Virus record (IMG/VR): IMGVR_UViG_3300031576_000002
Coordinates: 124,001 to 188,000 of that record
Length of the DNA: 64,000 bases
Direction: 5' to 3' (one strand)
Part shown: in pieces, positions 7,156 through 51,754 of the stretch
How the letters are laid out: each line of letters begins with the position of its first letter
Numbering within the stretch: the first letter of the stretch is position 1
Notes under the pieces: model-generated
The model's input: the letters and a program-made list of their open reading frames with translations, nothing else
What the model was told of the DNA's origin: nothing
The model's database searches: none
Translations under genes and position numbers: made by a program

Positions 7156-7160
7156 GACTG

Positions 7161-13823: not shown

Positions 13824-13906
13824 TTTAGAGCGCGCAGCAGCGGACTGTCAGAACCGTCTTTGGCCTTTAGCGCGTAGTCTGGGTCGCAGTAAAAGGAGTA
13901 GTTCAC
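13820..13906 (-). pseudogene. Displaced second copy of the glycoside hydrolase 3' end (28-aa mini-ORF)
   Basis: (V)NYSFYCDPDYALKAKDGSDSPLLRALK vs GH C-terminus GYGLVGGADGDSQLLAELR; GTG overlaps the HNH stop and TGA overlaps the next start. Confidence 0.6.
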
Positions 13907-22316: not shown

Positions 22317-22695
22317 GCACGTAGCATAACATGAAAATACCCCGAAAGTGAAGGTTCTGATCTTGGGTAAAGAAAGGGTGCTCCGGACCTCCGGTGAATA
22401 CCTTGAGCCGGTTGTTCTGCGTTACGTCCTCGACCATCTCCTCCGCATTGGCGTAAGGATTCTCGTCCACATACTCCACTTCAAACTTAGAAGTAATCCT
22501 GCGGAAAAGCTTGTCAAGATGAGCTACGAGTGCTTGGTAGGACGGCACCGCAGACGCATCGTGAGCAGGCGCTTTCTCGTAAGCAGTAGCAACGGCTTCG
22601 AGGTATTCATCCCAGTCCACTGGCATCAACTTGGCCAAACGCTCAAGTAACTGCGCGTTTTTCTCTGGCGCAGGTGTATAGTAGTCAGCATGCAT
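22294..22695 (-). CDS. N-terminal half of the split protein; start codon supplied by the element end
   Basis: NPYANAEEMVEDV..N.LKVF.GG.EHPFF..QNLHFRG; ATG 22695 lies inside the inverted repeat; original start probably ATG 23940. Confidence 0.7.
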   Translation of the reverse strand: MHADYYTPAPEKNAQLLERLAKLMPVDWDEYLEAVATAYEKAPAHDASAVPSYQALVAHLDKLFRRITSKFEVEYVDENPYANAEEMVEDVTQNNRLKVFTGGPEHPFFTQDQNLHFRGIFMLCYVHGHSKDM

Positions 22696-23914
22696 GACTG
22701 CTTAAGCCGCCACTTGCATAGCAGGTAAGCAGCCTTCTCGTTTCACAGAGGAACTTACAAGCGTATCCTCTCCACGAAGGGATAGCAGAGCCCGGTTTAA
22801 GACGTTTTTAGCCGCGTTGACATCTCTATCAAGGACCAAGCCACAAGCAGAGCAGATATGGACTCTTTCACTCAAACTCTTCTTCACAGTCATTCCACAT
22901 CCGCTGCACTCTTGGCTGGTGCCTCTGGGATTGACTTTTACCACTATCCTACCAGCTTCTTCCGCTTTGTAGGACAGCATGTGGAGCAACATCCCCATTC
23001 CAACATCTTTGAAGCTACGCCTGAATCCACGGCTGAGACCCTGGCTCATACCTTTCAGGTTCAAGTCTTCCACCGCAATCAGATCATACTCTTTGACCAA
23101 AGACTTAGACACTCCATCAAGAATATGCTTCCGAGTTCTTGTAACTTTCTGCCAAGCCTTAGCCAGTACCTTGACGGCTTTCCTTCTACGCTTAGATCCC
23201 TTCTGTCTCCTGGATACCGTTCTTTGAGCATGCTTGAGCTTCTTCTCGTTCTTGGCGTAAACACGTTGCCGCTCAATCAAGATGCCGTCTGAGGTAGCGA
23301 CTAGAGCTTGCATGCCTAGATCAATGCCAATGACTTTGCCAGTCTTGAGAAGAGGAGCTGGAAGCGGTAGCTCACAGGATAAGACGGCGTACCAGCCGTC
23401 AGCTTCTCTTTTGACTGTGACCTCTTTAACCTTGGCATCAGGCGGAAGCTCCCGATAAGGATTCCAGCGGAAGTGTCCCAGCTTGGAAAGATGTAGCTTT
23501 TTGCTGTCAAACTTGAAACCTGACTGATTGTATGTGAAGGAGTCGTACCGATCCCTACTCTTGAATCTGGGAAAGCCTGGCTTCTCTCCACGCTTGACTC
23601 TTCTGAAGAAAGCCTTGTACGTTTTGTCCAGTTTTTGAAGGACTGGGTGAAGAACTCTTGAATAGATCGTGTCATAGCCTTCTACCTGCTTTGAAACATA
23701 CTTAAGCTCTAGGCACTGATCGTAGAAGCTGAGAGTTCTATTATGCTGCTTCCACTCCAGGATTCGTTGTTCCAAAGCACAGTTGTAGAGGAAGCGGCAG
23801 AAATCCAGAAGCCGCTGGAGATTGATCTCCTGGGCCTTGGTAGGTTGGAGGCGGAACTTGTAGGAACGGCGCACGGCTAGAGTGTATCACAAGGGAGTTA
23901 AGGAATCACGCATG
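22689..23914 (-). mobile_element. tnpB-only cassette with terminal inverted repeats and 10-bp TSD (copy 1, 1226 bp)
   Basis: TIRs CATGCGTGATTCCTTAA / CATGCATGACTGCTTAA (14/17); flanks TAGTAGTCAG (22679-22688) and TAGTAGTTAG (23915-23924). Confidence 0.88.
22702..23874 (-). CDS. tnpB: RNA-guided endonuclease TnpB (390 aa)
   Basis: YKFRLQPT HTH; GIDLG, AVEDL, DRDVNAAKN RuvC residues intact; CSGCG/CSACG zinc finger. Confidence 0.95.
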   Translation of the reverse strand: MRRSYKFRLQPTKAQEINLQRLLDFCRFLYNCALEQRILEWKQHNRTLSFYDQCLELKYVSKQVEGYDTIYSRVLHPVLQKLDKTYKAFFRRVKRGEKPGFPRFKSRDRYDSFTYNQSGFKFDSKKLHLSKLGHFRWNPYRELPPDAKVKEVTVKREADGWYAVLSCELPLPAPLLKTGKVIGIDLGMQALVATSDGILIERQRVYAKNEKKLKHAQRTVSRRQKGSKRRRKAVKVLAKAWQKVTRTRKHILDGVSKSLVKEYDLIAVEDLNLKGMSQGLSRGFRRSFKDVGMGMLLHMLSYKAEEAGRIVVKVNPRGTSQECSGCGMTVKKSLSERVHICSACGLVLDRDVNAAKNVLNRALLSLRGEDTLVSSSVKREGCLPAMQVAA

Positions 23915-23938
23915 TAGTAGTTAGTGAAGGGCTCGGCC

Positions 23939-24406
23939 ATGAGTCAACCAGTAAAAAAAATCTCACACCGCTTCACTTGGAGCGACATCATCCGGGAGTC
24001 GGCATGGGCACAGTGGATTCGTATGACTCGGCCGCCAGGCTCGCGAATAACGCATACTCCGTGGGGGTGCATCCTCTCCGACATTCCTTCTGCCCAGCAG
24101 AAAATTGAAGCTCGAAAACTGCGCCGGGCTTACGAGTCTTGGATCGCCCAGGATGAAGAGCGTGCTCGTGACGCAGAGTTGTTCCGATTCTGGACCGCCG
24201 TGTTCCCTCCGCATCGCTTGCTCGTAGAGGTCACCGAAGCTTACGCGGCCGGCTTGCCGTACAAGAATATCCTCCGCGAGTACCGGCTACGGTTCAAAGT
24301 TCAGCCTCTCGGCTGGGCAAAGTGGGAAGCATTTGTTCGAGATCCGGAATCCGGCGGCGGAGTTCTCGTTCCATTCCGGGGTAGCCAAGAAGGAACGTCA
24401 CGATAG
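23939..24406 (+). CDS. Hypothetical protein (rare plus-strand gene)
   Basis: About 155 aa with protein-like composition; overlaps the minus-strand neighbour, so uncertain. Confidence 0.4.
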   Translation: MSQPVKKISHRFTWSDIIRESAWAQWIRMTRPPGSRITHTPWGCILSDIPSAQQKIEARKLRRAYESWIAQDEERARDAELFRFWTAVFPPHRLLVEVTEAYAAGLPYKNILREYRLRFKVQPLGWAKWEAFVRDPESGGGVLVPFRGSQEGTSR

Positions 24407-25499
24407 CGTCTGGACTCTGAAGTACCACGTCTCTCCAAGAGAGCGGGTACTTGGAGTAGGTGAGCTTGATCCCCAGCTCTTCAAAGTTCAATCCAAGCGC
24501 TGGACCGAATTTACGAAACCGGGAAGGAAACTTTCCTATCTCCTCTTCAGGGATGTGCCCTTTGACGTCAAAAGCGAGCGATACGATCACTTCGCTATCC
24601 CTGAGACGGTACATGCCCACGGGTCCGCCAGAGGGCTTGAAAATGATGGATTCTTGATCGAACCAGTTTCCCAGCTCCACCGCATCACGCCACTCCACCC
24701 CTTCTACTAGAATCGACCGCTCCCGCTCAGCGTAGAATCCGTAGACTGGCGTCCAGGAGTACCCTCGACGTTCAAGCTCTGAAGTCAACTCTCCGTGGCG
24801 ACGCCGGTTCTCGGCCCTCGACCTGTTTTCCTTTTCAGTGCGCTCCTCGATCTCCCGATCCCGCCAACGGATCCTCTCCGGTCGCGGAGAGGTCTGAAAC
24901 TCCTTCTCTCGGTCACGCTGTCTCTCCCACTGTTCCGGTACCTTTGGATCGAACTTCACGGCTCTGGGGTCGGGGCGGTAAGCAGACAGAACCGTGTAGG
25001 CTGCGCCCGGCCGCTGAAGGTACTCCAGATCCGTCACGCTAATCCCCAGCAAAGCTATCGCCCGTCCGAGAATGCCGGCCTGCACCTTGGGCACGTTAGA
25101 CCGCCATCCCGATCCGGGCGGCTTCTCGCGCGGATCTTTGCTGACAACCATCTCCTCCCAGAATTCCCTTACGCCAGGGCCTAGCAGTTGCCGCATCGGT
25201 CGCACGGCTTCCATGGGAACGGTTGGATAGATGCCGTCCCCACCAAGCTGACCGCTGAGAAGATCAACTTCGACTCCACCCGGCAATAGATTCCAGTTGT
25301 GGACTTGCCCGTCTGGGAGACGGCCATAGGCGATCTTGCCGCCTAGCTCTTGCTGCACGGCAAAGGCCACAGCAAGCGAATCCTTGGCCGTCGCTCCTTG
25401 GCTGTGAACGAGGCGCTGTACCTCTTGAAGTAGCGGCACAAAGTCGGCTGGAACTTCTCGCCCCTGCCCCAGCAGACTCAGAGCCCTGGCAAGAATCAT
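24294..25499 (-). CDS. YunG-like plus DUF3293-like fusion protein
   Basis: LAVAFAVQQELGG..HNWN.LP.G.EVDL..Q (YunG-like); VLSAY..ENRRRHGEL..L..GY...E.SILV..A.ELG..F.QESI (DUF3293-like). Confidence 0.65.
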   Translation of the reverse strand: MILARALSLLGQGREVPADFVPLLQEVQRLVHSQGATAKDSLAVAFAVQQELGGKIAYGRLPDGQVHNWNLLPGGVEVDLLSGQLGGDGIYPTVPMEAVRPMRQLLGPGVREFWEEMVVSKDPREKPPGSGWRSNVPKVQAGILGRAIALLGISVTDLEYLQRPGAAYTVLSAYRPDPRAVKFDPKVPEQWERQRDREKEFQTSPRPERIRWRDREIEERTEKENRSRAENRRRHGELTSELERRGYSWTPVYGFYAERERSILVEGVEWRDAVELGNWFDQESIIFKPSGGPVGMYRLRDSEVIVSLAFDVKGHIPEEEIGKFPSRFRKFGPALGLNFEELGIKLTYSKYPLSWRDVVLQSPDAIVTFLLGYPGMERELRRRIPDLEQMLPTLPSREAEL

Positions 25500-25521
25500 C
25501 ACGTCTCCCGAAAAGCCACGC

Positions 25522-25902
25522 TCAAGGCACAGGTAGGTAAGCCTTGGCCGCACTGACCAGGAGTACGCCAAAGGTCTGGCCTACCTTGCCGAGCAGCGCG
25601 TTCAGCTTCTCGCGGTCGCAGTTGCCCCGCTGAAGCGTCGCCAGGTCCGCCTTGGAGATCTCGATCCTGGCCTCGGGAGTCAGATTCTTCATGAGCAGGT
25701 CACGGGCTTCCTGGCTCATCTTGGCGCCGCGAATGGCGTGAACGATGTCAAACCAGATGTCCTGCGCGAACGCCTTGAGAAGATCCCGGATCTCAGGATC
25801 TTCAAGCATGCCCCCGATCTCGTCTTTGATCGTGTCCCGAAACCCGAGATCGTTGAGCAGAACGCCGAGCGTGCCCTTGATGTTGTCAAGCGAGTTAGCC
25901 AT
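25522..25902 (-). CDS. Hypothetical helical protein
   Basis: 126 aa with high codon bias; coupled to neighbours. Confidence 0.65.
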   Translation of the reverse strand: MANSLDNIKGTLGVLLNDLGFRDTIKDEIGGMLEDPEIRDLLKAFAQDIWFDIVHAIRGAKMSQEARDLLMKNLTPEARIEISKADLATLQRGNCDREKLNALLGKVGQTFGVLLVSAAKAYLPVP

Positions 25903-26476
25903 TCGATACCTCGGTTACGGGCTCCACGGCAGGAGCCGGCTCAGATGCAGGCGGGGGCTCCGCCGGTGGAATCGGCTCCACGGGTGCAGTTTCTTCCTTG
26001 AAGAGCAGATCAAACAGGCTCCCGAATACTCCGCCGAGGCCCTTATGGATACCGCCCCAGATCCCTCCCAGCAGCGCCAACGGGCCAGACTCGCGGTCCA
26101 AGTGCTCGACCACTTCCTTGGCCTTCAGCGCTTCAAGGCTCATCGCCTCCTTGGCTGGAGGGCACAGGTTGGAGTCTGCCGTACAGTCGCAGGCGGTCGC
26201 TTCCGTGCGAGCGGCGAGGTCATCGATCTCAACCGCGTAGATCCGGTAGGTCGATTCCTCTGGCATGGTCAGGGTGAGTACCTTCACCCTCGCCTCCCCG
26301 TACAGAGAGACGCGCGCTACGCACGAAGCGCACTCTTGGCAGTTCACCTCACTGTAGTCCTCTGCAAAGGCCCTGACGATGCTGACCGAGTTCGCAAAGC
26401 TCTCTTCCTGCTGAGCCGTGAACGCAGAACAGCTCGTGAGCAAAACGACGATGATCCCGGCGTAGATGGATCGCAC
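25895..26476 (-). CDS. Predicted lipoprotein with Cys pairs and Pro-rich tail
   Basis: (M)RSIYAGIIVVLLTSC lipobox after a G-rich SD; CQEC..C, CDC..C; Gly-rich amphipathic segment. Confidence 0.65.
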   Translation of the reverse strand: MRSIYAGIIVVLLTSCSAFTAQQEESFANSVSIVRAFAEDYSEVNCQECASCVARVSLYGEARVKVLTLTMPEESTYRIYAVEIDDLAARTEATACDCTADSNLCPPAKEAMSLEALKAKEVVEHLDRESGPLALLGGIWGGIHKGLGGVFGSLFDLLFKEETAPVEPIPPAEPPPASEPAPAVEPVTEVSNG

Positions 26477-26510
26477 GGCACCCCCCTTTACCCTAGTATC
26501 GAGGAGTTCG

Positions 26511-27077
26511 CTACTGCCGCTTCGACGGTCGTTTCCTAGGCTTCCGGGATTCCACAAGTAACCTAGCTATCTCGTCGAACTCTTTCACAGCGTCGGGATC
26601 TACGATCGCCAGCAGCGCTCTCACCGTCGCCGGCTCGAAGGCTCCGGCGTCGTGCAACGCTTGGATGTCCCACAGGTCAAGAGGCTGGTTGGCGTAGAAC
26701 TTTGCCATGACCAGCAGTTCCACGGGAAAGGTAGGAGCGTTCGTCCCCCACAACGTCTTCTGCACGGGATGGTCGATCGCCGAGGCTTCGGGTTCGTCCT
26801 CGGCGAAGAGCACGTCTACACGTTCCTTCACCCCACTAGCACCTGGAGGAAGGGCGATGTAGTGGTGCGGCGCAAAAACACGGTCCACTTGGAACCCGGC
26901 TTCCCGCAACGTCTTGAGCACTCGCCCCCTATCTCCCGGGCGGAAGAATGCGTCTACGTCCGCCGTGTACCGCGCAACGCCGTGCGCGTTCACAGCGGCT
27001 CCGCCTCCGACGGCATAGTCGATGCCCGCAGGCCCGACTGCTTGCACCAGGAGCTTCAGGATCTCTGCGGCTGTCAC
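26511..27077 (-). CDS. Nucleotidyltransferase family protein
   Basis: IDYAVGGGAAVNAHGVARYTADVDAFF; LLVMAKF....DLWDI. Confidence 0.8.
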   Translation of the reverse strand: MTAAEILKLLVQAVGPAGIDYAVGGGAAVNAHGVARYTADVDAFFRPGDRGRVLKTLREAGFQVDRVFAPHHYIALPPGASGVKERVDVLFAEDEPEASAIDHPVQKTLWGTNAPTFPVELLVMAKFYANQPLDLWDIQALHDAGAFEPATVRALLAIVDPDAVKEFDEIARLLVESRKPRKRPSKRQ

Positions 27078-27307
27078 GGTTCTTTCTTAGACGGCTTACT
27101 CACAGCCTTGGCCTGGAATGCCTGCATGACCTTCTGCCGGATGAGCTGGGGATTCACGGCGACATCCACGAACCCCAAAATCTCGTAGGCCGATGTGAAC
27201 CCCGACCAGGTAATGCTCACGCCCTTCCCGTCTTCTTCCGAGATCGTGATCTTGCGCGTCTTGCTGTCTTTCTTCAAGGTATCCTCCAAATAGAAACGGG
27301 GACGCAA
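27074..27307 (-). CDS. Hypothetical protein
   Basis: 77 aa, coupled to the NTase start. Confidence 0.55.
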   Translation of the reverse strand: MRPRFYLEDTLKKDSKTRKITISEEDGKGVSITWSGFTSAYEILGFVDVAVNPQLIRQKVMQAFQAKAVSKPSKKEP

Positions 27308-27339
27308 GCGTCCCCGTTTCTCAAGCGCTGATAGCGGAC

Positions 27340-28116
27340 TCAGTCGTCGCTACCGTCATCGCCATCATCATCGTCGGTGCTGTCGTCGTCGTCACCATCA
27401 TCGTCCGACGCCTCCGCCTTGGCAGTGCCCTCGTCGTCCTCTCCGCCTCCCTCGGCTGCCTCCTCTTCCTTCACCTTCTTGGCCTTCTTGACCTTCTTGG
27501 GAGCTTCCTCCTCCTCCTCAGCCTTGGCCTTCTTCACCTTCTTGGGGGCCTCCTCCGGCGCCTCAGCGGCCTTGGCCTTCTTACCCTTGCCCGTGTACTC
27601 GCCCCGGCCAACCTTCCTGAGTTCGCCCGCGTCACAGGCACGCTTGAGGTGGCCACTCGCACCCACGGCTTCGATCTCGAAGTGCTTCGCCACGTCGGTC
27701 GGGCTCACGACGTCCTTCTGCGCAGAGACCCACTCCACGACGGCCGACATCTTGAGCCGCTTCTTCTCACTCTTTGCAACCTTCGGCTTCTCCGTACCGG
27801 CTGCCTTCACCTTGGCAGGCCGTCCGCGCTTTTTCGGCGCCTCGGTCGTCTCCTCCACCTTCACCTTGGCGGGCCGCCCCCGACGCTTCACGGGTGCGTC
27901 GCCGTCTCCCGTGGACTCGGCCGAAGCCGCCTTCACGAACGCGGAGACGAGCCCCAGTGGAATGCTGGACGCTCCCACGGTCACGTTGCCGGTGCCGTTC
28001 GCGCTGAACAGCACTTCGTCGCCCGCGTGCAGGGTCACTCGGCCACCCTTGGAGGACACGAGGCCGACGCCCTTCTGGTACTCCTGGCTCTTCGCAACTT
28101 CGATCCTGAAATCCAT
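27340..28116 (-). CDS. Histone/HMGA-like nucleoid protein: two AT-hooks, winged helix, Lys-rich repeats, acidic tail
   Basis: KRRGRP and KKRGRP; SPTDVAKHF..ASGHLKRACDAGELRKVGRGEY; APKKVKKAK x2; poly-Asp C-terminus. Confidence 0.8.
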   Translation of the reverse strand: MDFRIEVAKSQEYQKGVGLVSSKGGRVTLHAGDEVLFSANGTGNVTVGASSIPLGLVSAFVKAASAESTGDGDAPVKRRGRPAKVKVEETTEAPKKRGRPAKVKAAGTEKPKVAKSEKKRLKMSAVVEWVSAQKDVVSPTDVAKHFEIEAVGASGHLKRACDAGELRKVGRGEYTGKGKKAKAAEAPEEAPKKVKKAKAEEEEEAPKKVKKAKKVKEEEAAEGGGEDDEGTAKAEASDDDGDDDDSTDDDDGDDGSDD

Positions 28117-28197
28117 GCTGCCTCCCGATTAGATGCGAACGACATGTTCGCTCTCACTATTGATTAGCTTGTACTCCCGTTGCTGTCAAGCCCAATC

Positions 28198-29216
28198 CTA
28201 GAAATTTCCTACATCGTGCTGATAGCCGAGGCTGTAGCGACGCGCAGAGGAATTGTTCGGGTAGCCTCGCTGCCCGGAAACGGTGGGACTCCCGTCCGTG
28301 TAGTAACACGGTACAAGCCAGATCGTGTCTACTCTCTGCTGCCGCCAGTACGCCAGCTCTCTGGCAACCTCTCCCGTCGGAATCTCGGCCCAGCCTGGAA
28401 TCTTGATGACAGGTGCGCTAGTCGTCATGCAGCCTCCGCGTACCACCCGCAGAACTGGCACCACGTTCCGCTTGAAGGATGGCGGTAGTTGTAGATCTTC
28501 TCCACGGGCTTACACTCTTCAGGAGTCGGGCGCGTCGCGTACCGCCCCCACCAATCCCCCGGGTAGCGCTGCGGGGGATTCTCGATCAGATCGAGACACG
28601 GCTGGTGCTCGGGGTAGAACTCTCGAATACGCCGGACAGCCTTGTGGTTATCCGGGTACACCAGCTTCCGCCGCGCCTCAATGATCTCGGAGTTGGCCTG
28701 CTCGATCGCAGCCTTCTCCTTCGTCCGCCGCTCATCAGAGAAGCGCGGATCATCGTGGAAGTGCTTCAACTCGTAGGAGGGTACCGGCCAGATTCCCGTA
28801 TACCCTCTCCGCGTACCGCTCGGGTCGTAGTAGCAGTGCTTGGAGTACTGGTAATGGCTGCTGATCCAAGCCTGAACGCGCGGATGGTCCTCGGGCAGAG
28901 GAATGTAGAGTTCCCGGTGCAGCGCGTCTCGCTTCGCCTTGTGAGCCTCCCAGGTCGTGAACGAGTCTCCGGCCGATTCGATCACAAGTCCGAGCAGGAT
29001 GAGCGTCGGACCTCTGGGAGGAGTGTTTCCAGCCGGGGTGTAGACGTTCTTTGTGAAGTAAGTCGGATAGCCCGGCGGGTCGCCGTAGCACCCATTTCCG
29101 GGATCCTGCTGGAGATGGTAGCTACCCGCAATCTTGGCGGTCGGGAGCTTCTCCAGGCGTTCCCGGTTGATCGTGCTCAAATCGTATTTCATGGAGTCTC
29201 CTTTCAAAAATATCAT
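28198..29216 (-). other. Two hypothetical CDS (28198-28428, 28425-29216)
   Basis: Coupled ORFs; AAGGAG SD before the downstream ATG (MKYDL) of the larger one; C-terminal WCQFC. Confidence 0.6.
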
Positions 29217-29241
29217 ACAACCGCATTCAAAAAATTTCCGG

Positions 29242-29315
29242 TGGGCACGGAAGGAATCGAACCTTCGACCACTCGGTTAAAAGCCGAATGCTCTAACCAA
29301 CTGAGCTACGCGCCC
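29242..29315 (-). tRNA. tRNA-Lys(UUU), CCA not encoded
   Basis: GGGCGCG TA GCTC AGTTGGTTA GAGC A TTCGG CTTTTAA CCGAG TGGTC GAAGG TTCGATT CCTTC CGTGCCC A; full cloverleaf, followed by CCG. Confidence 0.97.
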
Positions 29316-29548
29316 GTTTTGCGCGCCTTCAGCCACTGCTCGACGTAGCGTTTCGCAGGAGCGATCGTCTTGTAAGAACGCTGGGTCTCTTCCTTGTGGC
29401 ACCACGCATAGGCGCGGTAACCATAGAGTTTCCAGCACACCATTCCACCCGGCCGACCATTGGTGGTCTGGTAGCCGGTATAGTCGCCAACGCCATCATG
29501 CCGCCATCGCATACTATCCTCCGCATGCTTGCCCTTAGCTTTCTTCAA
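29306..29548 (-). CDS. Hypothetical protein; stop codon lies inside the tRNA 5' end
   Basis: 80 aa; TAG at 29306-29308 within the tRNA. Confidence 0.55.
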   Translation of the reverse strand: MKKAKGKHAEDSMRWRHDGVGDYTGYQTTNGRPGGMVCWKLYGYRAYAWCHKEETQRSYKTIAPAKRYVEQWLKARKTGA

Positions 29549-30490
29549 ATGTAGCCTCCTGCAAAGCCTCTCGCAGGATCCCCGTACTTATCCGTCAAAT
29601 CAGCAGCGATTCCCTCACCGCGAAGAAACGCTTCGATCGCTTCCGGCGGGGCACTCTGGAGTACGACCTTGCGCCGCTTGTCCGGCCCCGGACGGGGAAT
29701 AGCAAGGAACGGAATGCCCTCTCTCACTGACGCTTCCGGCAGTTCGGGCACATCGCCCCAACACTCTACAGAGTGCGGACACGCAGGAGCTTTGTTGGAC
29801 GGCAGGTTCGAGTGCGCCCCGCACTTGACTCCGAGCGCTCCCGGCAGAAGATACGCTACTACCGTGCCACCAAGCCGGGGGTGCTGGGCGGGATATTCTT
29901 CGGCCCGAATCCGTGCCAGACGTAGCACCTCACGCGCTCGCTCGACATCTACGAGCAACTCTTGTACGGAGCGCTTCTGGAACGCGGCACGCGAAGATAC
30001 GCGCCAGCTTCCCAGCAACTCCGGATCCACGCCCGGACACTCGCCCCGGTACGCTGCTCCAAGGCAATGGTCAGCAGCAGCGATCCAACGCTGCTCCAGA
30101 GTTGGCTCCTTCCCGAGCAAGGTAAGCGTCTGACCGAGCTAGGTACTCGACAGGAGGACGGCCGTAGCCGGGATCGCCCGGATGGTGATGGTCCACCATC
30201 CGAATCGAAATTCCCCGACAACTCGATACGTCATCAGCTTCGTCACGGTAGACCGGATTGAATCCGCACTCCACCAGGTATACGCTCGCGCCCGCAGGCA
30301 CCGTTGAGATCCACGTAGCGAGCGTCACCGTTCGTTCCGCATCCGCTACGCCTTCGCTGGCGTAGGCAACGCCCGAATGTACGCGGTACAAGCCCACGGT
30401 CGCGTACAGAACCCCCTGGCCGTGTTGCCGGAGCACGCTCTCGACCTCTTCCATCTCGGGGTCCGACGCTCCAAGAATGTAGATACTCAC
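29545..30490 (-). pseudogene. DHH-motif phage protein split by a +1 frameshift near 30140
   Basis: ILGASDPEM..RVHSGVAY..VECG..VDHHHPGDPGYG.PP.EYL continues as LGQTLTLLG..AAADHCL.AAY.G.CPGVDP in the +1 frame. Confidence 0.6.
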
Positions 30491-33148
30491 TGTTCTTTCT
30501 CCTGGCAGCCTGGACACCACTCGTCCGGGTGCGCCATGTAGGACCGGGCTACGGCTTGCGTGTCGAAGCAAATCACCCCGCCGTGTTCATTGCAGACAAG
30601 TTGCCACTTTCCCGCGTCTGGATCTTCGGACGGCTGGAGGCCGACCAGCGTGCCCGTACTGCGGGCGCGTGTAGCAGTCCTGATACCGTCCCAGTCTGCC
30701 GCAGCAGGATGTATTCTTGACATAAGCGGTCAGGGCGCAGCCTTGTGCGTAACGTAGTGCACCTTCATCGTCTTTCCCCGTCGCTCCATCTTTTCAAACA
30801 CGTACCCCTTCGGAGCACCCCCCAGAGCCAGAGCAGCTCCTCCCGCGTAGGGATCTACCGTGAACTCCTTCACGATCCGCTGTCTAACTTTCTCGCCCTT
30901 TTTCTTCACCGTTTCCCCTTTTAGCCCGTAGGCCGGTTCGCAACCTTACCGCCAGTATAGTCTTATGCGCCTATAGTGTCAAGTCCTTGTGCGTGGCTCT
31001 TAACTTCTCGCGAGCCTGCTCTGCCGTCATCGTCAGCGTCCGGACAGGATCCATCGCCTTCCCACACTTCCGGCAGGGGCGTTCTACGCCATCGTCTGAG
31101 AAGCGTACCCGGTGGCACTTCGGGTTGACGCACTGGAACATCAGACAGGCTTCCAACGTACCTTCCCTGCCCCGCTTCACCACGTCCATGAAGGATTTGA
31201 CCAGCGGGCGCGTACGCTGGATGAATTCAATTTCGTCTTCTACTGCGTCACGCACGATAAGGGGCTGGTTGCGCACGGAATTGATCGTGGTATTTCGGAC
31301 GCAGACTGGACACTTGATATGCCAGCGATCGGCGCGGTGCTCGAACTCCTTACCACAGTCGCAGCGCACCTGGAGAAAGTTGACCCGAGCCGTCCATCGA
31401 GCACCCAGTAGCTTCAAGGCTGCGGACTTTCCTCGCGCTTTTTGAACTGCCCTGACTTCTTACTGAAGGGATTCTTCCCCATCCGATAGGGATGTAGCGG
31501 ACACTCTTTGCTCGTACAACGCTTGACCTCGCTGGGAGCACCGCCCATGCACATCAAGCATAGCGCGCGAATCGCTTTCTTGCGGGACGTGTAGATCATT
31601 TTCCCTCACGCTTGCGCGGGCTTGATGACCATCACGGGTACACGACCGCCGCGCATCTTCAGGCATTCGTCTATCCGCTCTGCCACGTCTGCGAGCTTTT
31701 CCGCGTCCGCTTCTACTCTAGCCAGAGCTTTGGCATACTCTGCCCGCTCGAAATCTGGAAGATTGCGCAACACGATCGTCGCCGCGCTTCGGCCCAGATA
31801 CACCATAGTAAGAGCCAGGTCGGATAGATCCAGATGTCCCTCATCTATGCAGGTGTTGACAACTGCTTCAAGCCTACTCGTGGCGCGCTGCATGTCCTCC
31901 TGATAGACATCCTCTTCTGAATTCAAAACGTCCTCCGATCCTCAAACTTGAAGCCTGCGGCTGCAAGGTGGGCGCTTACCTGCGCAATCGCGCGTGCTTG
32001 GTGAGCTGCGTACTCTACCGCGGTTCTGGGGATGTCCAGCTCCCGCTCTGAATTCTCGATCGCGTTCTCCAGGATCTTCCACGGCATCGACTCGACCAAG
32101 GCGAGGGTGTCTTCACTCACACGGCGGAAGATGAGTCCCGCGCTCGGATAGCCCCACATTTCTCCAATAGCGAGGAGGTTGACCTGGTTCTTCGTCCAGG
32201 CTACATGGACAGGGTTGAGAGCTTCAGTCGGCATTTTTGACGGCCTCCCTGACGCTGTCCAGCGTCCGCTCGATATCGCTCAGACGATCTACGATCGGCT
32301 GGACGGCTTCGTTCACATCAGAAGGCTGAGCCGTACTTCCTATCTCGCCAGAGATGTCTTCAAGCCTTTCCAAAATCTTGTCGTAGTCACCCTCGACGCT
32401 GCGGATCCGGTCGCGCAGGTAGCTGAACTCCACCGCCATCCAGCGACGAAGTTGTTCGAGCGTCAGCTCTTCCGAATCGGCCGGCTGCACCGACGGCTGC
32501 AACGGCGACAGAACTGTAGGCTGGAGCTTTTCTGCTTTTTTCATCGAGCCCTCAGTGCGCCATACACGGCGCTGATTTTGGATGCTTAGAAGAATCGTAA
32601 CGCAGGCGCAAAGTCCGGTAGAGCACGGACAAGTCCGCGTCTTCTGCGCCTCCTACTAGAATACCGTTCTTGTACACGTCGGCGCGGAATACTCGATCTG
32701 CGCCATCCCACCAGACCTCGGCCCAGAATGCTGCCGCTGCTACGGGAGCCCAGACCGCTTGTGCCCGGAGTTGCTCTGCGGTACCAGCTTCTACTTCCAG
32801 GCCGGCGATGTCGGTCATGGTCAACGCACTCTCGGATAGCTGAGGAGGGCGCATGTAGTTGTGCCAGCACAACTAGGTAGGCTTAGCCTTTCTACTTTCT
32901 AACTGCTCCAGATCTTTATGCGCCGCTCTCAAGGCAACAACAGAGTCCTTCAGGAAGTCGGAGATCACTTCTCGCTCCACCTGAGTCGTCGCTGTATCGA
33001 ACTCTTGCCTGAGAAACTCCAACGCCTTCGTGTGCCGGTGGATCTGTCCAAGAATGCGTGCTCGTGCCTGGCGTATCTCAGATACTTTTCGCTTCTTCTT
33101 GGGCTCTTTCTTGGGCGGAAGTACCCGCGTGGACCCGAAGTCATTCAT
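30487..33148 (-). other. Run of small hypothetical CDS (30487-30723, 30730-30909, 30971-31417, 31414-31599, 31606-31926, 31923-32234, 32224-32544, 32552-32872, 32873-33148)
   Basis: Tightly packed and co-oriented; several are Cys-rich (CDCG..CPVC; CLMC..C..CPLHPYRMGKNP). 30730-30909 was translated manually. Confidence 0.65.
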
Positions 33149-33182
33149 GAAGTCTTCGGCGGCTGGAAACTATCACCTTTAT

Positions 33183-34394
33183 GCGACAGAAGAGGCCGCT
33201 CTGTGCTACAGTATCGGCTATGATTCAGCTCACCCTCCGACTCAAGCTCAGGCCAACTCCTGAGCAGAAGTCTATCTTCTATACCACCTCGGAGCAGCAT
33301 ACTCAATCTTACAACTACGCCTGCAACTTTGGCTGGAAGAACAGCACTGCCAACCGGATCGAGATTCATCATGGTGTCTACCGTGCCCAAAGAGAGGCGA
33401 CTCAGCTTCCTTCTCAACTTGTCGTATCCAGCATTACCAGGGCTTCTGAATCTCTAGCCTCTGCCAAAGCCTTGAGAAGGAAAAAGAAGAAAGTAGCCTG
33501 TCCAAAGTCCAAACTCTGCCCCATCCGATACGATTCAAGATCCTCCACAGTCAATCTCAAAGAAGGCTTTGCCGCTCTAGCAACCGTATCCGGCAGACAA
33601 AGAGTCCAGTTCAAAGTCCCTGACTTTCAACTTCCATACATTGACTGGAAAGTCTGCTCTTCCGATCTTATCCGGAATAGGAAGGGTAACTACTTCCTTC
33701 ATGTCGTAGTCAGCCGTGAAGAGGAACCGTTCATACCCGTTAAGAGAACAGTCGGAGTCGATCTTGGTATCACGCATCCAGCCGTAACTTCCAAGAACAA
33801 GTTTTTGGGTAAGAGGAGCTGGAAGAACGTAGAAAGGAGAAACTTCAAACTGAGGCGTTCCCTTCAAGCCAAAGGCACAAAATCTGCCAAGAGACATCTT
33901 CAAAAGCTCTCTGGTAGACAGAAACGTTTCCGGCGTGACTGTGACCGTGTCTTGAGTAAGCAGTTGGTCCAGTCTTGTAAGAAGGGTTCTACCTTGGTAT
34001 TTGAAAACTTGAAAGAGATCCGATCCGGTAACTCCAAAGGCAAGAGGTTCAACCGGAAGCTCCACGGTTGGAGCTTTGACCAACTTCAAGCCTTTGTAGA
34101 GTACAAAGCAAAGATGAGAGGTATCCAAGTTGTTTACGTGGATCCCCGGTACACCTCTCAGAAATGCTCCAAGTGTAAGTTCAGGAGCAAGAAAAACCGG
34201 ATCTCTCAAAGTAGCTTCCAGTGTCGAAGCTGCGGGTTCAGGATTCATGCTGATCTCAATGCAGCTAGAAACATACGGAAGCGGTATCTTTTTACTCAGG
34301 CTAAAAGTTTGGGTAACGGGCTTATGTCAACAAGCCTAGTGCAGAGGTCAAAAGATCATCTGCAAGCTGCCTGCTTCGGCCGGTAGTAGTTGAT
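33183..34394 (+). mobile_element. IS200/IS605-family (IS1341-like) tnpB-only element
   Basis: Left flank TTTAT with an imperfect hairpin; right end GCAAGC..GGTAGTAGTTGAT; no TIRs; removal restores a TAA stop in the minus-strand gene. Confidence 0.75.
33220..34386 (+). CDS. tnpB: RNA-guided endonuclease TnpB (388 aa; divergent from the other two)
   Basis: LKLRPT; GVDLG, VFENL, HADLNAARNI; CSKC/CRSC. Confidence 0.93.
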   Translation: MIQLTLRLKLRPTPEQKSIFYTTSEQHTQSYNYACNFGWKNSTANRIEIHHGVYRAQREATQLPSQLVVSSITRASESLASAKALRRKKKKVACPKSKLCPIRYDSRSSTVNLKEGFAALATVSGRQRVQFKVPDFQLPYIDWKVCSSDLIRNRKGNYFLHVVVSREEEPFIPVKRTVGVDLGITHPAVTSKNKFLGKRSWKNVERRNFKLRRSLQAKGTKSAKRHLQKLSGRQKRFRRDCDRVLSKQLVQSCKKGSTLVFENLKEIRSGNSKGKRFNRKLHGWSFDQLQAFVEYKAKMRGIQVVYVDPRYTSQKCSKCKFRSKKNRISQSSFQCRSCGFRIHADLNAARNIRKRYLFTQAKSLGNGLMSTSLVQRSKDHLQAACFGR

Positions 34395-34885
34395 GCCAGA
34401 AAGCACTCCGGCTCTTCCGTCGCGTTCAGGTACAGGCAGCACACCTCCGTCCAGGGTCTGCCATCCGTATCGACCACTTCGGATTGCCAGCAAACCTTCT
34501 CCGGCTGGATCTCGGGACTATCGGTGTGGCAATCGAACGTACAATTCGGATTGACTCGATCGCAAGCGGACAAGAAGATCAGCAAACTGATGACCTTCAC
34601 CCACCTCATCCCGTTCCAGTACATTCCCTTCCCCCGCACTTCTGCCCACCAGCGTTCCACTACAGAATTGTTAAGATACGTCTCGGCCGAGTTGTGATTC
34701 AAGACTTCCTCTCCTCCTGCCGTGAAGACTCGAATCCGATTCCCGTAGCGTCCCTTTCCAGGAATCCGCCACCGGACGCCTCGCGGTTTCCGATCGGTGT
34801 TGCAGTAGCCTTGATCTATCTCAGCCCGCAGACCAAGGCCAGCCCCATTGATTTCGGCCGCGATAGTTTTCAATCGGCGCGACAT
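34322..34885 (-). CDS. Apparent in-frame fusion of a basic phage protein and a Cys-rich lipoprotein; last 23 codons read into the tnpB element
   Basis: Internal SD plus ATG 34609 (MRWVKVISLLIFLSAC); the natural end would be ..ECFLA-stop. Confidence 0.55.
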   Translation of the reverse strand: MSRRLKTIAAEINGAGLGLRAEIDQGYCNTDRKPRGVRWRIPGKGRYGNRIRVFTAGGEEVLNHNSAETYLNNSVVERWWAEVRGKGMYWNGMRWVKVISLLIFLSACDRVNPNCTFDCHTDSPEIQPEKVCWQSEVVDTDGRPWTEVCCLYLNATEEPECFLASTTTGRSRQLADDLLTSALGLLT

Positions 34886-34895
34886 GTTTTCAGCA

Positions 34896-35138
34896 CTAGG
34901 CGGCCGACTGCTCTTCCGTTGCCAATGCGCTAGCCGCGTTCTCTGCTTCCCACCGTTCCAGATCCACTTCGAACAGGCAGGTCTGCACGAACCCGATCAC
35001 GGCTTCGGCACCCCGCCGCTCCAGCTCGCTGTTCCACTTCGCCTTGCGCTTGTGCTCGACCTTGCCCTCTTCCCGGATGCGTCGGGCTTCCTTGGCCTTC
35101 TTCACCTTCTCCTGCTTGCGCGACTTGGACTTTCGCAT
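34896..35138 (-). CDS. Basic hypothetical protein
   Basis: GGAGG SD and GTATAGTA box upstream. Confidence 0.6.
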   Translation of the reverse strand: MRKSKSRKQEKVKKAKEARRIREEGKVEHKRKAKWNSELERRGAEAVIGFVQTCLFEVDLERWEAENAASALATEEQSAA

Positions 35139-35157
35139 TTCAGTTGCCTCCTGATTC

Positions 35158-35165
35158 TACTATAC
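35158..35165 (-). promoter_or_regulatory. GTATAGTA -10-like box
   Basis: Followed by GGAGG SD and ATG 35138. Confidence 0.65.
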
Positions 35166-35195
35166 CGCGCCAATCTTAGAATTCCGCACCCCTGG

Positions 35196-35996
35196 CTATA
35201 TTTCTGTCCAGGCTCGAACCCGTTCTCGGCACTCCGCCAGATACCCCTCTTGCAGGTCCAGGAAGTGCCAGGACTTGTAAAGAATGAAAGGACTGTGCGA
35301 GGTTGCGATGACCTGGAAACGCTTCGCCAGTTTGGGAACGATCTCATTCCAGAGAACCATTTGATTCGGCAGGCTCAGGCTCATGTCAGGTTCATCGAGC
35401 AGAATCGTACTCGGGCCTGTCCGTGGAAGCGTCTTCACGTACTCCGAGAACGCTGTCCAGCCCTCTACCCACAGGCTGTTATATTTCCGATCTGGATTTT
35501 TTGTAAGGTCCGGAACTTGATCCAGCAACTCTGCGATTCTTTCAATCTTATGGATTCGCCGCTGTCCCTCGCTCGGCTTTTGCGCGATCTCCTGAATCTG
35601 GTCCTTCATCGAAGTCATGCCATCGGCAGAATTCTCGGCCCGGTCCACGAAGAAGGAAAGCCCGTCTCGATCCGCGGCTGCATTGAGAAAGGTTGGAGTC
35701 CCGTCCCATTCTATATTTGCAGTACACTGGCCCGGTGCTCGTATGGCTAAGCAGTCTGGAAGATTGGGCGGCTTCCTCCGCAAAACCCCGATCTCGATAA
35801 TGTCTCCGGGGTCAGGGTGTTTCGACCAGCCTCCTGTCGTGATCCCGCAGTAGACCCCCGTGATCTTGAGCGCAGTCGTCTTCCCGCACCCGTTCGGCCC
35901 AAAGAGAATGTTGACTCCGGGCTTGAACTTGAGCTTGCCCTTGAACGCAGGAAGCTGCGCGGCAAAGCCCGTCTTGACTCGGAAGGACTGGATCAT
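35196..35996 (-). CDS. ABC-type (AAA_21-like) ATPase, leaderless start ATG 35996
   Basis: GPNGCGKT, SEGQ, LLDEPD, ATSHSPF. Confidence 0.88.
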   Translation of the reverse strand: MIQSFRVKTGFAAQLPAFKGKLKFKPGVNILFGPNGCGKTTALKITGVYCGITTGGWSKHPDPGDIIEIGVLRRKPPNLPDCLAIRAPGQCTANIEWDGTPTFLNAAADRDGLSFFVDRAENSADGMTSMKDQIQEIAQKPSEGQRRIHKIERIAELLDQVPDLTKNPDRKYNSLWVEGWTAFSEYVKTLPRTGPSTILLDEPDMSLSLPNQMVLWNEIVPKLAKRFQVIATSHSPFILYKSWHFLDLQEGYLAECRERVRAWTEI

Positions 35997-36002
35997 CGGA
36001 CG

Positions 36003-36010
36003 TACTATAC
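36003..36010 (-). promoter_or_regulatory. GTATAGTA box, leaderless
   Basis: TATAGT 7 nt before ATG 35996. Confidence 0.65.
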
Positions 36011-36047
36011 AGCGCGCTTCCAAAAATACGCACCTATCCCGTCGAGC

Positions 36048-37273
36048 CATGCGTGACTCCTTAAGCCCTCTGTGCTACCATCCAGCCATGCGGCGTTCCT
36101 ACAAGTTCCGGCTTCAACCGACCAAGGCTCAGGAGATCAATCTCCAGAGGCTCCTGGACTACTGCCGCTTTCTCTACAACTGCGCTTTGGAGCAGCGTAT
36201 TACAGAATACAAACAGCATAAGAGGACTCTCAGCTACTACGATCAAGCCTTAGAACTTAAGCACGTATCCAAGCAGGTAGAAGGCTACGACACAGTCTAC
36301 GCCAAAGTCTTGCAGGTTGTCCTTCAAAAACTGGATCTAGCTTACAAGGCTTTCTTCAGAAGGATCAAGCGTGGAGAGAAGCCGGGCTTTCCACGGTTCA
36401 AGAGTAGGGATCGGTACGACTCCTTTACCTACAACCAGTCTGGTTTCAAGTTTGACAGTCAAAGGCTGCATCTTTCCAAGCTGGGCCATTTCCGCTGGAA
36501 TCCTTATCGACAACTTCCACCAGACGATAAGGTCAAAGAGGTCACAGTCAAAAGAGAAGCCGACGGTTGGTACGCAGTCTTATCCTGTGAGCTACCCCTT
36601 CCAGAACCTCTTCCCGCGACTGGAAAGGTCGTTGGTATTGATCTAGGCATGCAAGCTCTAGTTGCTACCTCAGATGGAATCGTAATTGAACGCCAACGTG
36701 TCTACGCCAAGAATGAGAAGAAGCTCAAGCATGCTCAGAGAACGGTTTCCAGAAGAAAGAAAGGCTCTAACCGTAGAAGAAAAGCAGTCAAGGTATTGGC
36801 TAAGGCTTGGCAGAAAGCTACAAGAACTCGGAAGCATATTCTTGATGGAGTGTCTAAGCAGTTGGTACAGAACTATGATCTGATTGCGGTTGAAGACCTG
36901 AACCTGAAAGGGATGAGTCAAGGGCTCAACCGTGGATTCAGGCGTAGCTTCAAGGATGTCGGAATGGGGATGTTGCTTCACATGCTGTCCTACAAAGCGG
37001 AAGAAGCTGGTAGGATAGTGGTGAAAGTAGATCCCAGAGGAACCAGCCAGGAATGTAGTGGATGCGGAGCAACTGTGAAGAAGAGTTTGAAAGAAAGAGT
37101 TCATAACTGCTCTGCTTGTGGCTTGGTCCTTGATAGAGATGTCAACGCGGCTAAAAACGTCTTAAGCAGGGCTCTGCTATCCCTTCGTGGAGAGGATACG
37201 CTTGTAAGTTCCTCTGTGAAGCGAGAAGATTTCTTAAGTGCTGCTCAGGCAGCGGCTTAAGCAATCACGCATG
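36048..37273 (+). mobile_element. tnpB-only cassette with terminal inverted repeats and 10-bp TSD (copy 2, 1226 bp)
   Basis: TIRs CATGCGTGACTCCTTAAGCC / CATGCGTGATTGCTTAAGCC (18/20); flanks CCCGTCGAGC (36038-36047) and CCCGTCGAAT (37274-37283). Confidence 0.9.
36088..37260 (+). CDS. tnpB: RNA-guided endonuclease TnpB (390 aa), close paralog of 22702-23874
   Basis: Same length and motifs as copy 1; stop TAA lies inside the right TIR. Confidence 0.95.
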   Translation: MRRSYKFRLQPTKAQEINLQRLLDYCRFLYNCALEQRITEYKQHKRTLSYYDQALELKHVSKQVEGYDTVYAKVLQVVLQKLDLAYKAFFRRIKRGEKPGFPRFKSRDRYDSFTYNQSGFKFDSQRLHLSKLGHFRWNPYRQLPPDDKVKEVTVKREADGWYAVLSCELPLPEPLPATGKVVGIDLGMQALVATSDGIVIERQRVYAKNEKKLKHAQRTVSRRKKGSNRRRKAVKVLAKAWQKATRTRKHILDGVSKQLVQNYDLIAVEDLNLKGMSQGLNRGFRRSFKDVGMGMLLHMLSYKAEEAGRIVVKVDPRGTSQECSGCGATVKKSLKERVHNCSACGLVLDRDVNAAKNVLSRALLSLRGEDTLVSSSVKREDFLSAAQAAA

Positions 37274-37602
37274 CCCGTCGAATCGCCGCCTGCCCAGGGA
37301 CTTCGCCAGTGGGGGAGGGGTAGGAGGTCATCCGACCGCAGCTCGATCGACATCTCTAGGGCTTGGTACTCGTAGCACTCCAAGCCCGCCAGCCACCAGC
37401 CAGAGGCAATCAGCTCCTCTTCCGAGGCGTCGGTAGGATCCTGCATGCAAACGTCGAATACGATCTGCGGCTCGTCAGCCATACCGCAGGTCGTCCGCTG
37501 AAGGGCCAGGATGGCGCAGAAGAAACCGGCCGGCGCCTTGGCCTCCGCCAACATCGGAATCCGCAAGGTGTGCGCAAGTAGGAGTAAGGCTAAGGCACGC
37601 AT
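37234..37602 (-). CDS. Hypothetical protein whose last codons are replaced by the cassette end
   Basis: Excising the cassette gives ..DSTG-TAG. Confidence 0.5.
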   Translation of the reverse strand: MRALALLLLAHTLRIPMLAEAKAPAGFFCAILALQRTTCGMADEPQIVFDVCMQDPTDASEEELIASGWWLAGLECYEYQALEMSIELRSDDLLPLPHWRSPWAGGDSTGMRDCLSRCLSST

Positions 37603-51726: not shown

Positions 51727-51754
51727 GTTTCTCACGGAGTCTCTCCCTCCTGCT

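Follow-up and report, generated by a model that had tools for sequence, protein, structure and literature searches.

Two copies of a 1226-bp cassette that carries a single tnpB gene were found in a phage contig (IMGVR_UViG_3300031576_000002, also Ga0247727_10000083; 205,227 bp), within the 64,000-bp stretch analyzed here, which corresponds to bases 124001-188000 of the contig and is hereafter called the window. The contig also carries a third copy, beyond the limits of the window. Each of these elements is probably a transposase-less cassette of the mobile insertion cassette (MIC) type, bounded by 20-bp terminal inverted repeats (TIRs) like those of ISH8-related insertion sequences (ISs) of the IS4 family, whose cargo is tnpB together with an overlapping predicted guide RNA (omegaRNA) and which would be moved in trans.

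The limits of the window copies, A and B, were obtained from a pairwise alignment of 22600-24000 (minus strand) with 35960-37360 (plus strand), in which the likeness sets in precisely at CATGCG and breaks off precisely at GCATG, leaving 1226 bp in each copy at approximately 86% identity. A first-pass annotation of the window had described two elements of this length with TIRs of 17-20 bp, imperfect 10-bp direct repeats at their flanks and the tnpB stop codon inside the right TIR, and each of these points was borne out: the TIRs pair at 14/17 (15/20) positions in copy A and at 18/20 in copy B. The features of the two copies are the following.

Cassette copy A, 22689..23914, minus strand: 1226 bp, delimited by the similarity limits against copy B and the TIR pattern at both ends.
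Copy A left TIR, 23895..23914, minus strand: CATGCGTGATTCCTTAACTC, two mismatches to the consensus.
Copy A right TIR, 22689..22708, plus strand (read inward): CATGCATGACTGCTTAAGCC, holding the tnpB stop TAA (22702-22704).
Copy A left 10-bp target duplication, 23915..23924, minus strand: CTAACTACTA, 9/10 identical to the right one.
Copy A right 10-bp target duplication, 22679..22688, minus strand: CTGACTACTA, predicted start of the omegaRNA guide.
Copy A tnpB, 22702..23874, minus strand: 390 aa, GTG start, recognized by its Pfam domains and by a ratio of nonsynonymous to synonymous substitution rates (dN/dS) of 0.10-0.12 against the other copies.
Cassette copy B, 36048..37273, plus strand: 1226 bp, delimited by the alignment and the TIR pattern.
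Copy B left TIR, 36048..36067, plus strand: CATGCGTGACTCCTTAAGCC, no mismatch to the consensus.
Copy B right TIR, 37254..37273, minus strand (read inward): CATGCGTGATTGCTTAAGCC, containing the tnpB stop TAA (37258-37260).
Copy B left 10-bp target duplication, 36038..36047, plus strand: CCCGTCGAGC, 8/10 identical to the right one.
Copy B right 10-bp target duplication, 37274..37283, plus strand: CCCGTCGAAT, putative start of the omegaRNA guide.
Copy B tnpB, 36088..37260, plus strand: 390 aa, ATG start, recognized by its Pfam domains and a structure match to ISDra2 TnpB.

The TIR consensus, CATGCGTGAYNNCTTAAGCC, has CAT at positions 1-3, T at position 15 and TAA at positions 15-17. Scanning the window with this consensus at up to three mismatches returned four matches, which were exactly the four cassette ends, with 0.19 matches expected from shuffled sequences. 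The third cassette, copy C, is also 1226 bp long and lies near the start of the contig (contig bases 2734-3959, positions 2961-4186 of locus L003); its TIRs agree at 17/20 positions and its flanking 10-mers, GGTGGAGCGG and GGTGGAGCGA, at 9/10. A TIR scan of viral contigs recovered the three cassettes of this contig with no further ends on it, and on the remaining viral contigs produced a single chance match, composed of a ribosome-binding site and a start codon (L014).

A search of 5.8 billion proteins placed the closest TnpBs outside this phage at 50-56% identity, and eight of the nearest relatives were fetched with their flanks. Two of them displayed the same architecture: L017 (54% TnpB identity) has the TIRs CATCCGTAATCGGTTAGC and CATCCGTGATCGGTCAAGC with a perfect 10-bp duplication, GATCAGGATT, and L104 (50% identity) has the TIRs TACCCATGACTAGTTAAGGG and CATCCGTGATCAGTTAAGCC with the duplication TGTTTGGCGG / TGTTTGTCGG. 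TIRs of 17-20 bp were thus present in all three copies as well as in L017 and L104, and 10-bp flanking repeats stood at the exact ends in 5/5 elements, being imperfect in four and perfect only in L017. By an arithmetic estimate, a flank match of at least 8/10 at a fixed position has a chance of about 4e-4 per element; an unconstrained local-alignment test for flanking repeats had little power. These are five independent insertions, each with a duplication of 10 bp, which is the size made by this IS4 subgroup. Staggered cuts by TnpB itself were rejected as the source of the duplications since the three insertion sites on this contig are unrelated in sequence.

Inside the cassette, tnpB is the only long open reading frame (ORF) with a family match, and a DDE transposase with the YREK motif is not encoded there. 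IS repeats therefore surround a cargo without a transposase, which is the arrangement that distinguishes a MIC, and this lack of a transposase identifies the cassette as a non-autonomous derivative of an ISH8-like IS4 element rather than an autonomous member. The combination of IS4-type ends and 10-bp scars around tnpB further indicates that the nuclease has been captured by a different kind of transposon.

The assignment of the ends follows the survey of the IS4 family (PMC2266710), in which direct repeats are approximately 10 bp in general, the IS231 subgroup has ends of the form CAT-------AA--TAA--- with direct repeats of 10-12 bp, and the ISH8 subgroup has ends of the form CAT-----------T----- with direct repeats of 10 bp. 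The cassette consensus fits this table in its CAT at positions 1-3, its T at position 15 and its TAA at positions 15-17. The earlier suggestion of IS4/IS231-like ends accordingly stands as far as the family is concerned, on the ends and the 10-bp duplication, but not for IS231, the nearest named relatives of the partner transposase being the haloarchaeal elements annotated as ISHvo12 or ISH8.

It had also been set down beforehand that an IS4-like transposase sharing these inverted repeats should be found, and 185,579 bacterial and archaeal genomes, one per species, were scanned with the pattern CATSCGTGAYNNSTTAAGCC, from which 80 loci were listed. Such transposases emerged in L176, L141 and ISHvo12. 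About 45 of the 80 listed loci (many of those numbered L110-L188) carried a conserved coding motif (..MRDALSLLDQC..), present in dozens of Lachnospiraceae genomes, that matches the 20-nt TIR pattern and were set aside as noise. We take this MRDALSLLDQ motif to be dnaX-like; it illustrates how conserved genes can flood a pattern scan when whole genome collections are searched. One metagenome-assembled genome (MAG) of the Thermoanaerobaculia had the same end six times, in each case 120-140 nt short of where the contig stops, the placement that a collapsed repeat should give, and the end recurred in two other Thermoanaerobaculia MAGs. Related ends were present in MAGs of Delta-, Gamma- and Alphaproteobacteria, Xenobia and Halorhodospira, with a marked excess of ...GATCGSTTAAGCC. 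Upon translation toward the terminus, these ends yielded a common C-terminus, ..PDPNxKR..A*, whose stop is the TAA of the repeat. The multi-copy Thermoanaerobaculia end, with its GTGAAACGAAG string, had been considered as a TnpB right end and was discarded, given that it translates to the C-terminus of an IS4 transposase. Multi-copy ends of the form CATCCGTGATTCCTTAAGCC... in L109, L113, L116 (Methanobacteriota MAG SAR81) and L131, for which about 100 nt of the interior was covered, are nearer to the left cassette repeat than to the right one.

These loci show that IS4-family transposase genes end 13-16 bp from the identical terminus, in multiple copies in some MAGs. The L176 ORF (414-1751) matched the NCBIfam model transpos_IS4_1 (NF033592) with 223.8 bits and the L141 ORF (102-1505) with 241.4 bits, at a cut-off of 115 bits, and both matched Pfam DDE_Tnp_1 (2e-23 for L176). 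The two transposases are 44% identical and conserve the Y-2-R-3-E-6-K motif. The right end of L176, CATGCGTGATCGCTTAAGCC, is 19/20 identical to that of copy B, and the L141 element, approximately 1454 bp long, has the left repeat CATGAGTGACCAGTTAGC. Compared with a plasmid collection, the L141 transposase matched best to haloarchaeal IS4 elements annotated as ISHvo12 or ISH8. ISHvo12 of Haloferax volcanii pHV1 has the repeats CATCCGTGTTCGGTTAAGC and CATTGGTGTTCGGTTAAGC and a perfect 10-bp duplication, CTCTCCAGAG, and its transposase stop is the TAA inside the right repeat. The final ...GCT TAA of tnpB and that of the IS4 transposase genes occupy one and the same register within the repeat, which fits tnpB having taken the place of the transposase gene while the element end was kept. 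As a separate observation, the IS4 element of L141, a Rhizobium MAG contig, adjoins a gene fragment at 1540-1778 for a HUH/Y1 (RAYT or IS200-like) transposase (..VVLPDHLHCIW..).

The cassette protein had been described in the first-pass annotation as a catalytically intact TnpB of 390 aa, and the conserved residues point in the same direction. Both window ORFs matched Pfam HTH_OrfB_IS605, OrfB_IS605 and Cas12f1-like_TNB; the RuvC residues D185, E269 and D349/D351 and the zinc-ribbon residues C323/C326/C341/C344 were invariant among 16 relatives; and the nearest solved structure was ISDra2 TnpB (E 5e-52, residues 3-372). Between the three copies, dN/dS was 0.10-0.14 at a synonymous divergence (dS) of 0.45-0.6, indicating that all three tnpB genes have been kept by selection and split long ago. 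The target duplications of A, B and C differ at 4/30 positions, below the dS between copies, from which the insertions appear old, yet younger than the split of the copies. The possibility that duplication divergence equals copy divergence was rejected on the same figures (4/30 mismatches against a dS of about 0.5).

In the remaining near relatives, the cassette ends were preserved to different extents. L101 and L103 keep a cassette-type right end, their left end being degenerate; nothing but ...CGGATG survives in L018, L102 and L020; and L016 retains nothing recognizable. L018, L102 and L016 have no left repeat and still bear an intact tnpB. Short direct repeats persist among the relatives without a recognizable left repeat, namely CAGTTCTG in L018 (about 77 nt upstream of tnpB and in the right flank), a gapped direct repeat of roughly 20 nt in L020 and TTGATCGG in L101; these span from upstream of tnpB to the base following ...GGATG. 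Neither TIRs nor duplications were found in about 90 relatives from metagenomes and viral contigs at no more than 45% identity, and a metagenome scan for further TnpB relatives yielded nothing above that identity. In the tree, the near relatives formed one clade (support 98/98) separate from the TnpBs of Firmicutes, Chloroflexi and Acidobacteriota, and the repeat-bearing TnpBs were scattered inside it. The genomic contexts of this clade were mostly phage-like, including tail genes, thymidylate synthase, an AcrVA2-like gene and runs of small ORFs. The AcrVA2-like protein (PF26125) is encoded at 763-1746 of the L104 contig, upstream of the cassette by approximately 1.2 kb; proteins of the AcrVA2 family inhibit Cas12a, itself a relative of TnpB.

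The 3' portion of tnpB and the right TIR together make up the predicted omegaRNA, which has the following extent in the window copies.

Copy A predicted omegaRNA scaffold, 22689..22860, minus strand: tnpB 3' end through the right TIR, approximate limits.
Copy B predicted omegaRNA scaffold, 37100..37273, plus strand: from the fold, approximate limits.

The last 130 nt of six elements share one predicted fold, comprising the stem CUUCGUGGAGAGG...CCUCUGUGAAGCGAG, a terminal hairpin, ACGSAUG and then the flank, and the right TIR constitutes the 3' arm of the terminal hairpin. The copy A scaffold exhibits the conserved motif CCUUCGUGGAGAGG...CUCUGUGAAACGAGAAG followed by the terminal hairpin GGCUGCUUA...UAAGCAGUC, and copy B folds into the stem CUUCG..GAGAGG..CCUCU..GAAGCGAG followed by the hairpin GAUU.CUUAAG...CUUAAG.AAUC. 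The hairpin arms covary between copy A (GGCUGCUUA/UAAGCAGUC), copy B (GAUU.CUUAAG/CUUAAG.AAUC) and L017 (GGUCGG.CAAGC/GCUUG.CCGAUC), and the pair changes seen across copies and relatives comprise GGCUGC/GCAGUC, GAUUUC/GCAAUC and GGUCGG/CCGAUC. L018, which is devoid of the repeat, has a hairpin of only 5 bp at this position. Across the three copies, synonymous variation is 0.4-0.5 where the ORF begins (5' end) and 0.21 in its last 30 codons, a drop that weakly suggests an overlapping RNA. No Rfam family matched the region. The left end showed no hairpin on reading (its 40 nt, which mirror the right repeat, were read and not folded separately), so that a hairpin is seen at the right end alone. 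The most variable stretch, after GAAGCGAGAAG, was considered as an internal guide and rejected, this stretch being the 5' arm and loop of the hairpin that pairs with the right repeat. By analogy with the TnpBs of IS200/IS605 elements and with Fanzor1 (PMC10711439), the guide may instead start with the right 10-bp duplication, and an omegaRNA running through the right repeat would possess a guide made of the duplication and the next several bases.

Taken as a sequence of events, this organization would work as follows. A transposase of the IS4 family, most likely encoded by an element that the host cell carries, would act in trans: it would bind both repeats, excise the cassette and paste it into a 10-bp staggered cut. 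The omegaRNA would be transcribed through the right repeat into the flank, and TnpB would cut the cassette-free site, either that left after excision or that of a co-infecting phage, whereupon recombination with a cassette-bearing genome could restore or spread the cassette. Mobilization in trans is thus proposed by analogy with the established behavior of IS4-family elements and TnpB.

Several observations weigh against this interpretation. The transposase was found in other genomes only, none of them tied to the host of this phage, and a search limited to two N-terminal peptide patterns revealed no IS4 transposase on the phage contig or on viral contigs. No duplication was visible around the L141 element, although this k141 contig is short and its flanking sequence could be chimeric. 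No empty site was found: scans of IMG/VR through relatives of two flanking proteins returned only this contig, and two further assemblies of the same phage, located by exact-protein look-up of a neighbor gene, both carry copy A (a Logan contig among the further assemblies breaks inside the cassette). The omegaRNA is a modeled structure, and the five nucleotides to the left of the duplications (CTTCA, CCTAT and TTCCC at the A, B and C sites, and ATTCA and ATTAC in the other two elements) give no clear target-adjacent motif (TAM), their T-richness at -4 and -3 being at most a faint hint. Finally, four of five duplications are imperfect and dS reaches about 0.5, which makes these insertions old; the cassettes may by now have lost their mobility.

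This last point leads to the strongest alternative, which we regard as rather unlikely: the ends would be relics, the cassettes would no longer transpose, and they would persist and spread only through TnpB-guided cutting of cassette-free phages followed by recombination, i.e., homing. Besides the imperfect duplications and the divergence of the copies, the 15/20 repeats of copy A, the intact tnpB genes of L018, L102 and L016 next to part or none of a right end and no left repeat, the mostly phage-borne character of the whole clade and the free-standing HNH homing genes in the same window are in its favor. However, the sites of the three copies are unrelated to one another and every one of them bears a separate 10-bp duplication, which implies that each copy arrived by staggered-cut insertion, and the repeats of copies B and C still agree at 18/20 and 17/20 positions. 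The alternative moreover bears on present activity and not on origin.

The insertion sites raise a second alternative. Copy A interrupts a minus-strand gene 25 nt from its original start (23940-23938), which has an in-frame stop two codons upstream. Its right end reads CATGCATG in place of the CACGCATG of copies B and C, and this C-to-T change creates an outward ATG (22693-22695) in frame with the remainder of the split gene; gene callers start a 133-aa product there (L230 4108-4509), which begins MHADYYTP... where the original gene would give MAEPFTNYYTP.... Copy B lies at the stop of the upstream ORF, ahead of an AAA-ATPase gene, the L017 cassette sits between two convergent genes, and the L104 cassette precedes a gene with its own ribosome-binding site. 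Read outward on the minus strand, the left end of copy B (36048-36067) gives GGCTTAAGGAGTCACGCATG, i.e., AAGGAG, six bases and an ATG that shares the reading frame of the AAA-ATPase ORF (35196-36050); the position of the P-loop points to the internal Met19 as the real start, and use of the outward ATG is doubtful. In copy C, ORFs of 76 and 81 aa begin at the outward ATGs of its two ends, which may be a product of chance in GC-rich DNA.

It could be imagined that the phage has exapted a TnpB with a flank-fixed guide, to be directed at rival phages or at the DNA of the host, for instance, and that the mobile features are incidental. We consider this improbable. The maintenance of three diverged copies by strong purifying selection within a single genome, the insertions at gene boundaries where the neighbors stay readable and the in-frame ATG gained by copy A to restart the downstream gene would all agree with it, but the three flank-derived guides have no known target, nothing separates the intact RuvC site from selection at the level of the element, and the exapted TnpBs described to date are usually immobile single copies (PMC10691335).

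Two further explanations are very hard to sustain. An ordinary TnpB-only element of the IS200/IS605 group (IS1341-type), moved by a Y1 transposase with the repeats and 10-mers being coincidences or by-products of the omegaRNA, would account for the typical ISDra2-like protein and for the subterminal hairpin that resembles IS200/IS605 right ends, but not for 10-bp repeats at the exact ends in 5/5 elements, a left end that mirrors the right one with no hairpin seen, or a 20-bp terminus that also ends real IS4 transposase genes in many genomes, and IS200/IS605 elements have neither duplications nor inverted ends (PMC13565253). Movement by some other integrase that makes staggered cuts, be it a casposase-type Cas1 or an uncharacterized enzyme of the phage, is just as implausible: no partner was found in the phage with the two peptide patterns and Cas1-linked TnpBs with flanking repeats exist in Asgard archaea (PMC10691335), yet IS4-family elements have the identical terminus, ISHvo12 has a duplication of the same length, 10 bp, and neither Cas1 nor another integrase occurs near any copy.

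Returning to the trans-mobilized IS4 cassette, a broader and more tentative reading, which we hold to be possible though not probable, extends it to the whole of this mostly phage-borne TnpB clade as the cargo of IS4/ISH8-type cassettes forming a two-mode RNA-guided homing module. The host IS4 transposase would provide rare new insertions, each programming the guide with its own duplication and flank, and TnpB would drive the cassette into co-infecting phages that lack one; in addition, the CATG termini may have taken on a role in restarting phage genes split by an insertion, as the in-frame ATG of the copy A right end would do.

As regards the surrounding DNA, the long ORFs of the window lie on the minus strand almost throughout, and its phage-type genes include an HNH endonuclease, a Thg1-like tRNA-His guanylyltransferase, a DHH phosphoesterase, glycosyltransferases and one tRNA-Lys. 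Neither megablast nor blastn found a close relative of the window DNA among 50,697 phage records, and an Rfam search of the window matched only a tRNA. A third tnpB gene in the window, of another lineage, lies between copies A and B (33181-34386, plus strand, 401 aa); its product is approximately 31% identical to the cassette TnpB over 262 aa and the gene has neither inverted repeats nor a flanking duplication. The HNH endonuclease gene (13903-14493, minus strand; phrog_826, 3e-42) is free-standing and represents another type of selfish element in this genome. Just upstream of copy A, a 425-aa ORF (24294-25571, minus strand; 401 aa as called in L230) contains DUF3293 and gave weak S-adenosylmethionine-lyase-like matches, so that an anti-restriction role is possible. 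Other features on the minus strand are the Thg1-like gene (50902-51786; phrog_4717, 2e-76), the tRNA-Lys(UUU) gene (29240-29315) and a run of glycosyltransferase-like genes (3064-10928) with GT2, GT47/RXYLT1-like and Glyco_trans_1_2 domains.

The cassette is of interest beyond this phage. The obligate mobile element-guided activity (OMEGA) nucleases are thought to offset the loss that follows from scarless excision of IS200/IS605 and IS607 elements, and their cooperation with cut-and-paste DDE transposition has been studied mostly through eukaryotic Fanzors, which are difficult to manipulate. A 1.2-kb cassette with an ISDra2-like TnpB, IS4 ends of a known type, a variable 10-bp duplication and several natural copies would offer a simple prokaryotic model, in which the variable duplication is expected to become the first part of the guide. 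If the predicted RNA is correct, a single stretch of 20 bp can belong to a guide RNA and at the same time be the site that a transposase binds. Phages would also be added to the places where such hybrids persist under selection, and compact TnpBs whose guide directly follows a defined repeat may be of practical interest as editing tools.

Among known systems, a close precedent in organization is MIC231 of Bacillus cereus, in which the repeats of IS231, an IS4-family element, flank a passenger gene without a transposase, with movement expected in trans and duplications of approximately 10 bp. The cassette shares with it IS4-family repeats round a transposase-less passenger (the end signature and repeat length of IS231 being those of PMC2266710), and departs from it in a passenger that is an RNA-guided nuclease with its predicted guide RNA fused to the right repeat, in ISH8-like repeats and in a phage carrier. 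With ISHvo12, the ISH8-type elements and the bacterial elements of L176 and L141, it has in common the near-identical 19-20-bp ends (CATSCGTG..STTAAGC), the 10-bp duplication and the stop TAA in the right repeat; those elements, however, encode a DDE transposase with the YREK motif in the place where the cassette has TnpB, and the likeness is limited to the terminal 20 bp or so. The IS630, ISL2 and IS1031 families, by comparison, make duplications of 2-4 bp.

These three are the DDE partners of TnpB named in a 2026 review (as ISL2, IS630 and IS1031; PMC13565253), and to call the arrangement unprecedented in prokaryotes would be too strong. The main text of Altae-Tran et al. 2023 (PMC10691335) describes six DDE-associated TnpB branches (DDE-1 to DDE-6), all with inverted terminal repeats, and reports that solo TnpBs with the same ends as these branches are probably moved in trans. 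TnpB within inverted-repeat elements, solo versions and a tnpB 3' end close to the transposon end are shared with the cassette; IS4/ISH8 ends, 10-bp duplications and a phage-borne multi-copy cassette are absent from that main-text description. No report of an IS4/ISH8-type transposase-less TnpB cassette in phage or prokaryotes was found in the full-text literature, a coverage that does not extend to the branch-listing supplement of PMC10691335. Prokaryotic TnpBs that are linked to DDE transposases and have inverted ends are already on record, as is Fanzor1 within IS4-type elements of viruses.

The IS1341 group resembles the cassette in its single tnpB, its size of about 1.2-1.4 kb and an omegaRNA overlapping the 3' end, which is predicted here. 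Its parent group IS200/IS605 has no inverted ends and no duplications and inserts next to a TAM by means of hairpin ends (PMC13565253), and all three features differ in the cassette. The closest counterparts in viruses concern Fanzor1: Bao and Jurka 2013 described it in IS4-type elements of Ectocarpus siliculosus virus 1 (ESV-1) with 18-bp repeats and 8-bp duplications (PMC3627910), and Yoon et al. 2023 reported a non-autonomous Fanzor1 element present in two copies in Spodoptera frugiperda ascovirus (SfAV), with its repeats within the guide-RNA scaffold (PMC10711439). A nuclease of the TnpB family in virus-borne elements with TIRs and target duplications is common to all of them. The SfAV element is likewise nuclease-only and multi-copy with repeats in the guide-RNA scaffold, the scaffold of the cassette being a predicted one, whereas the ESV-1 elements also encode an IS4-type transposase and make duplications of 8 bp. 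Both of those cases involve eukaryotic viruses and a divergent Fanzor1, whereas the cassette described here brings a typical ISDra2-like TnpB into a bacteriophage.

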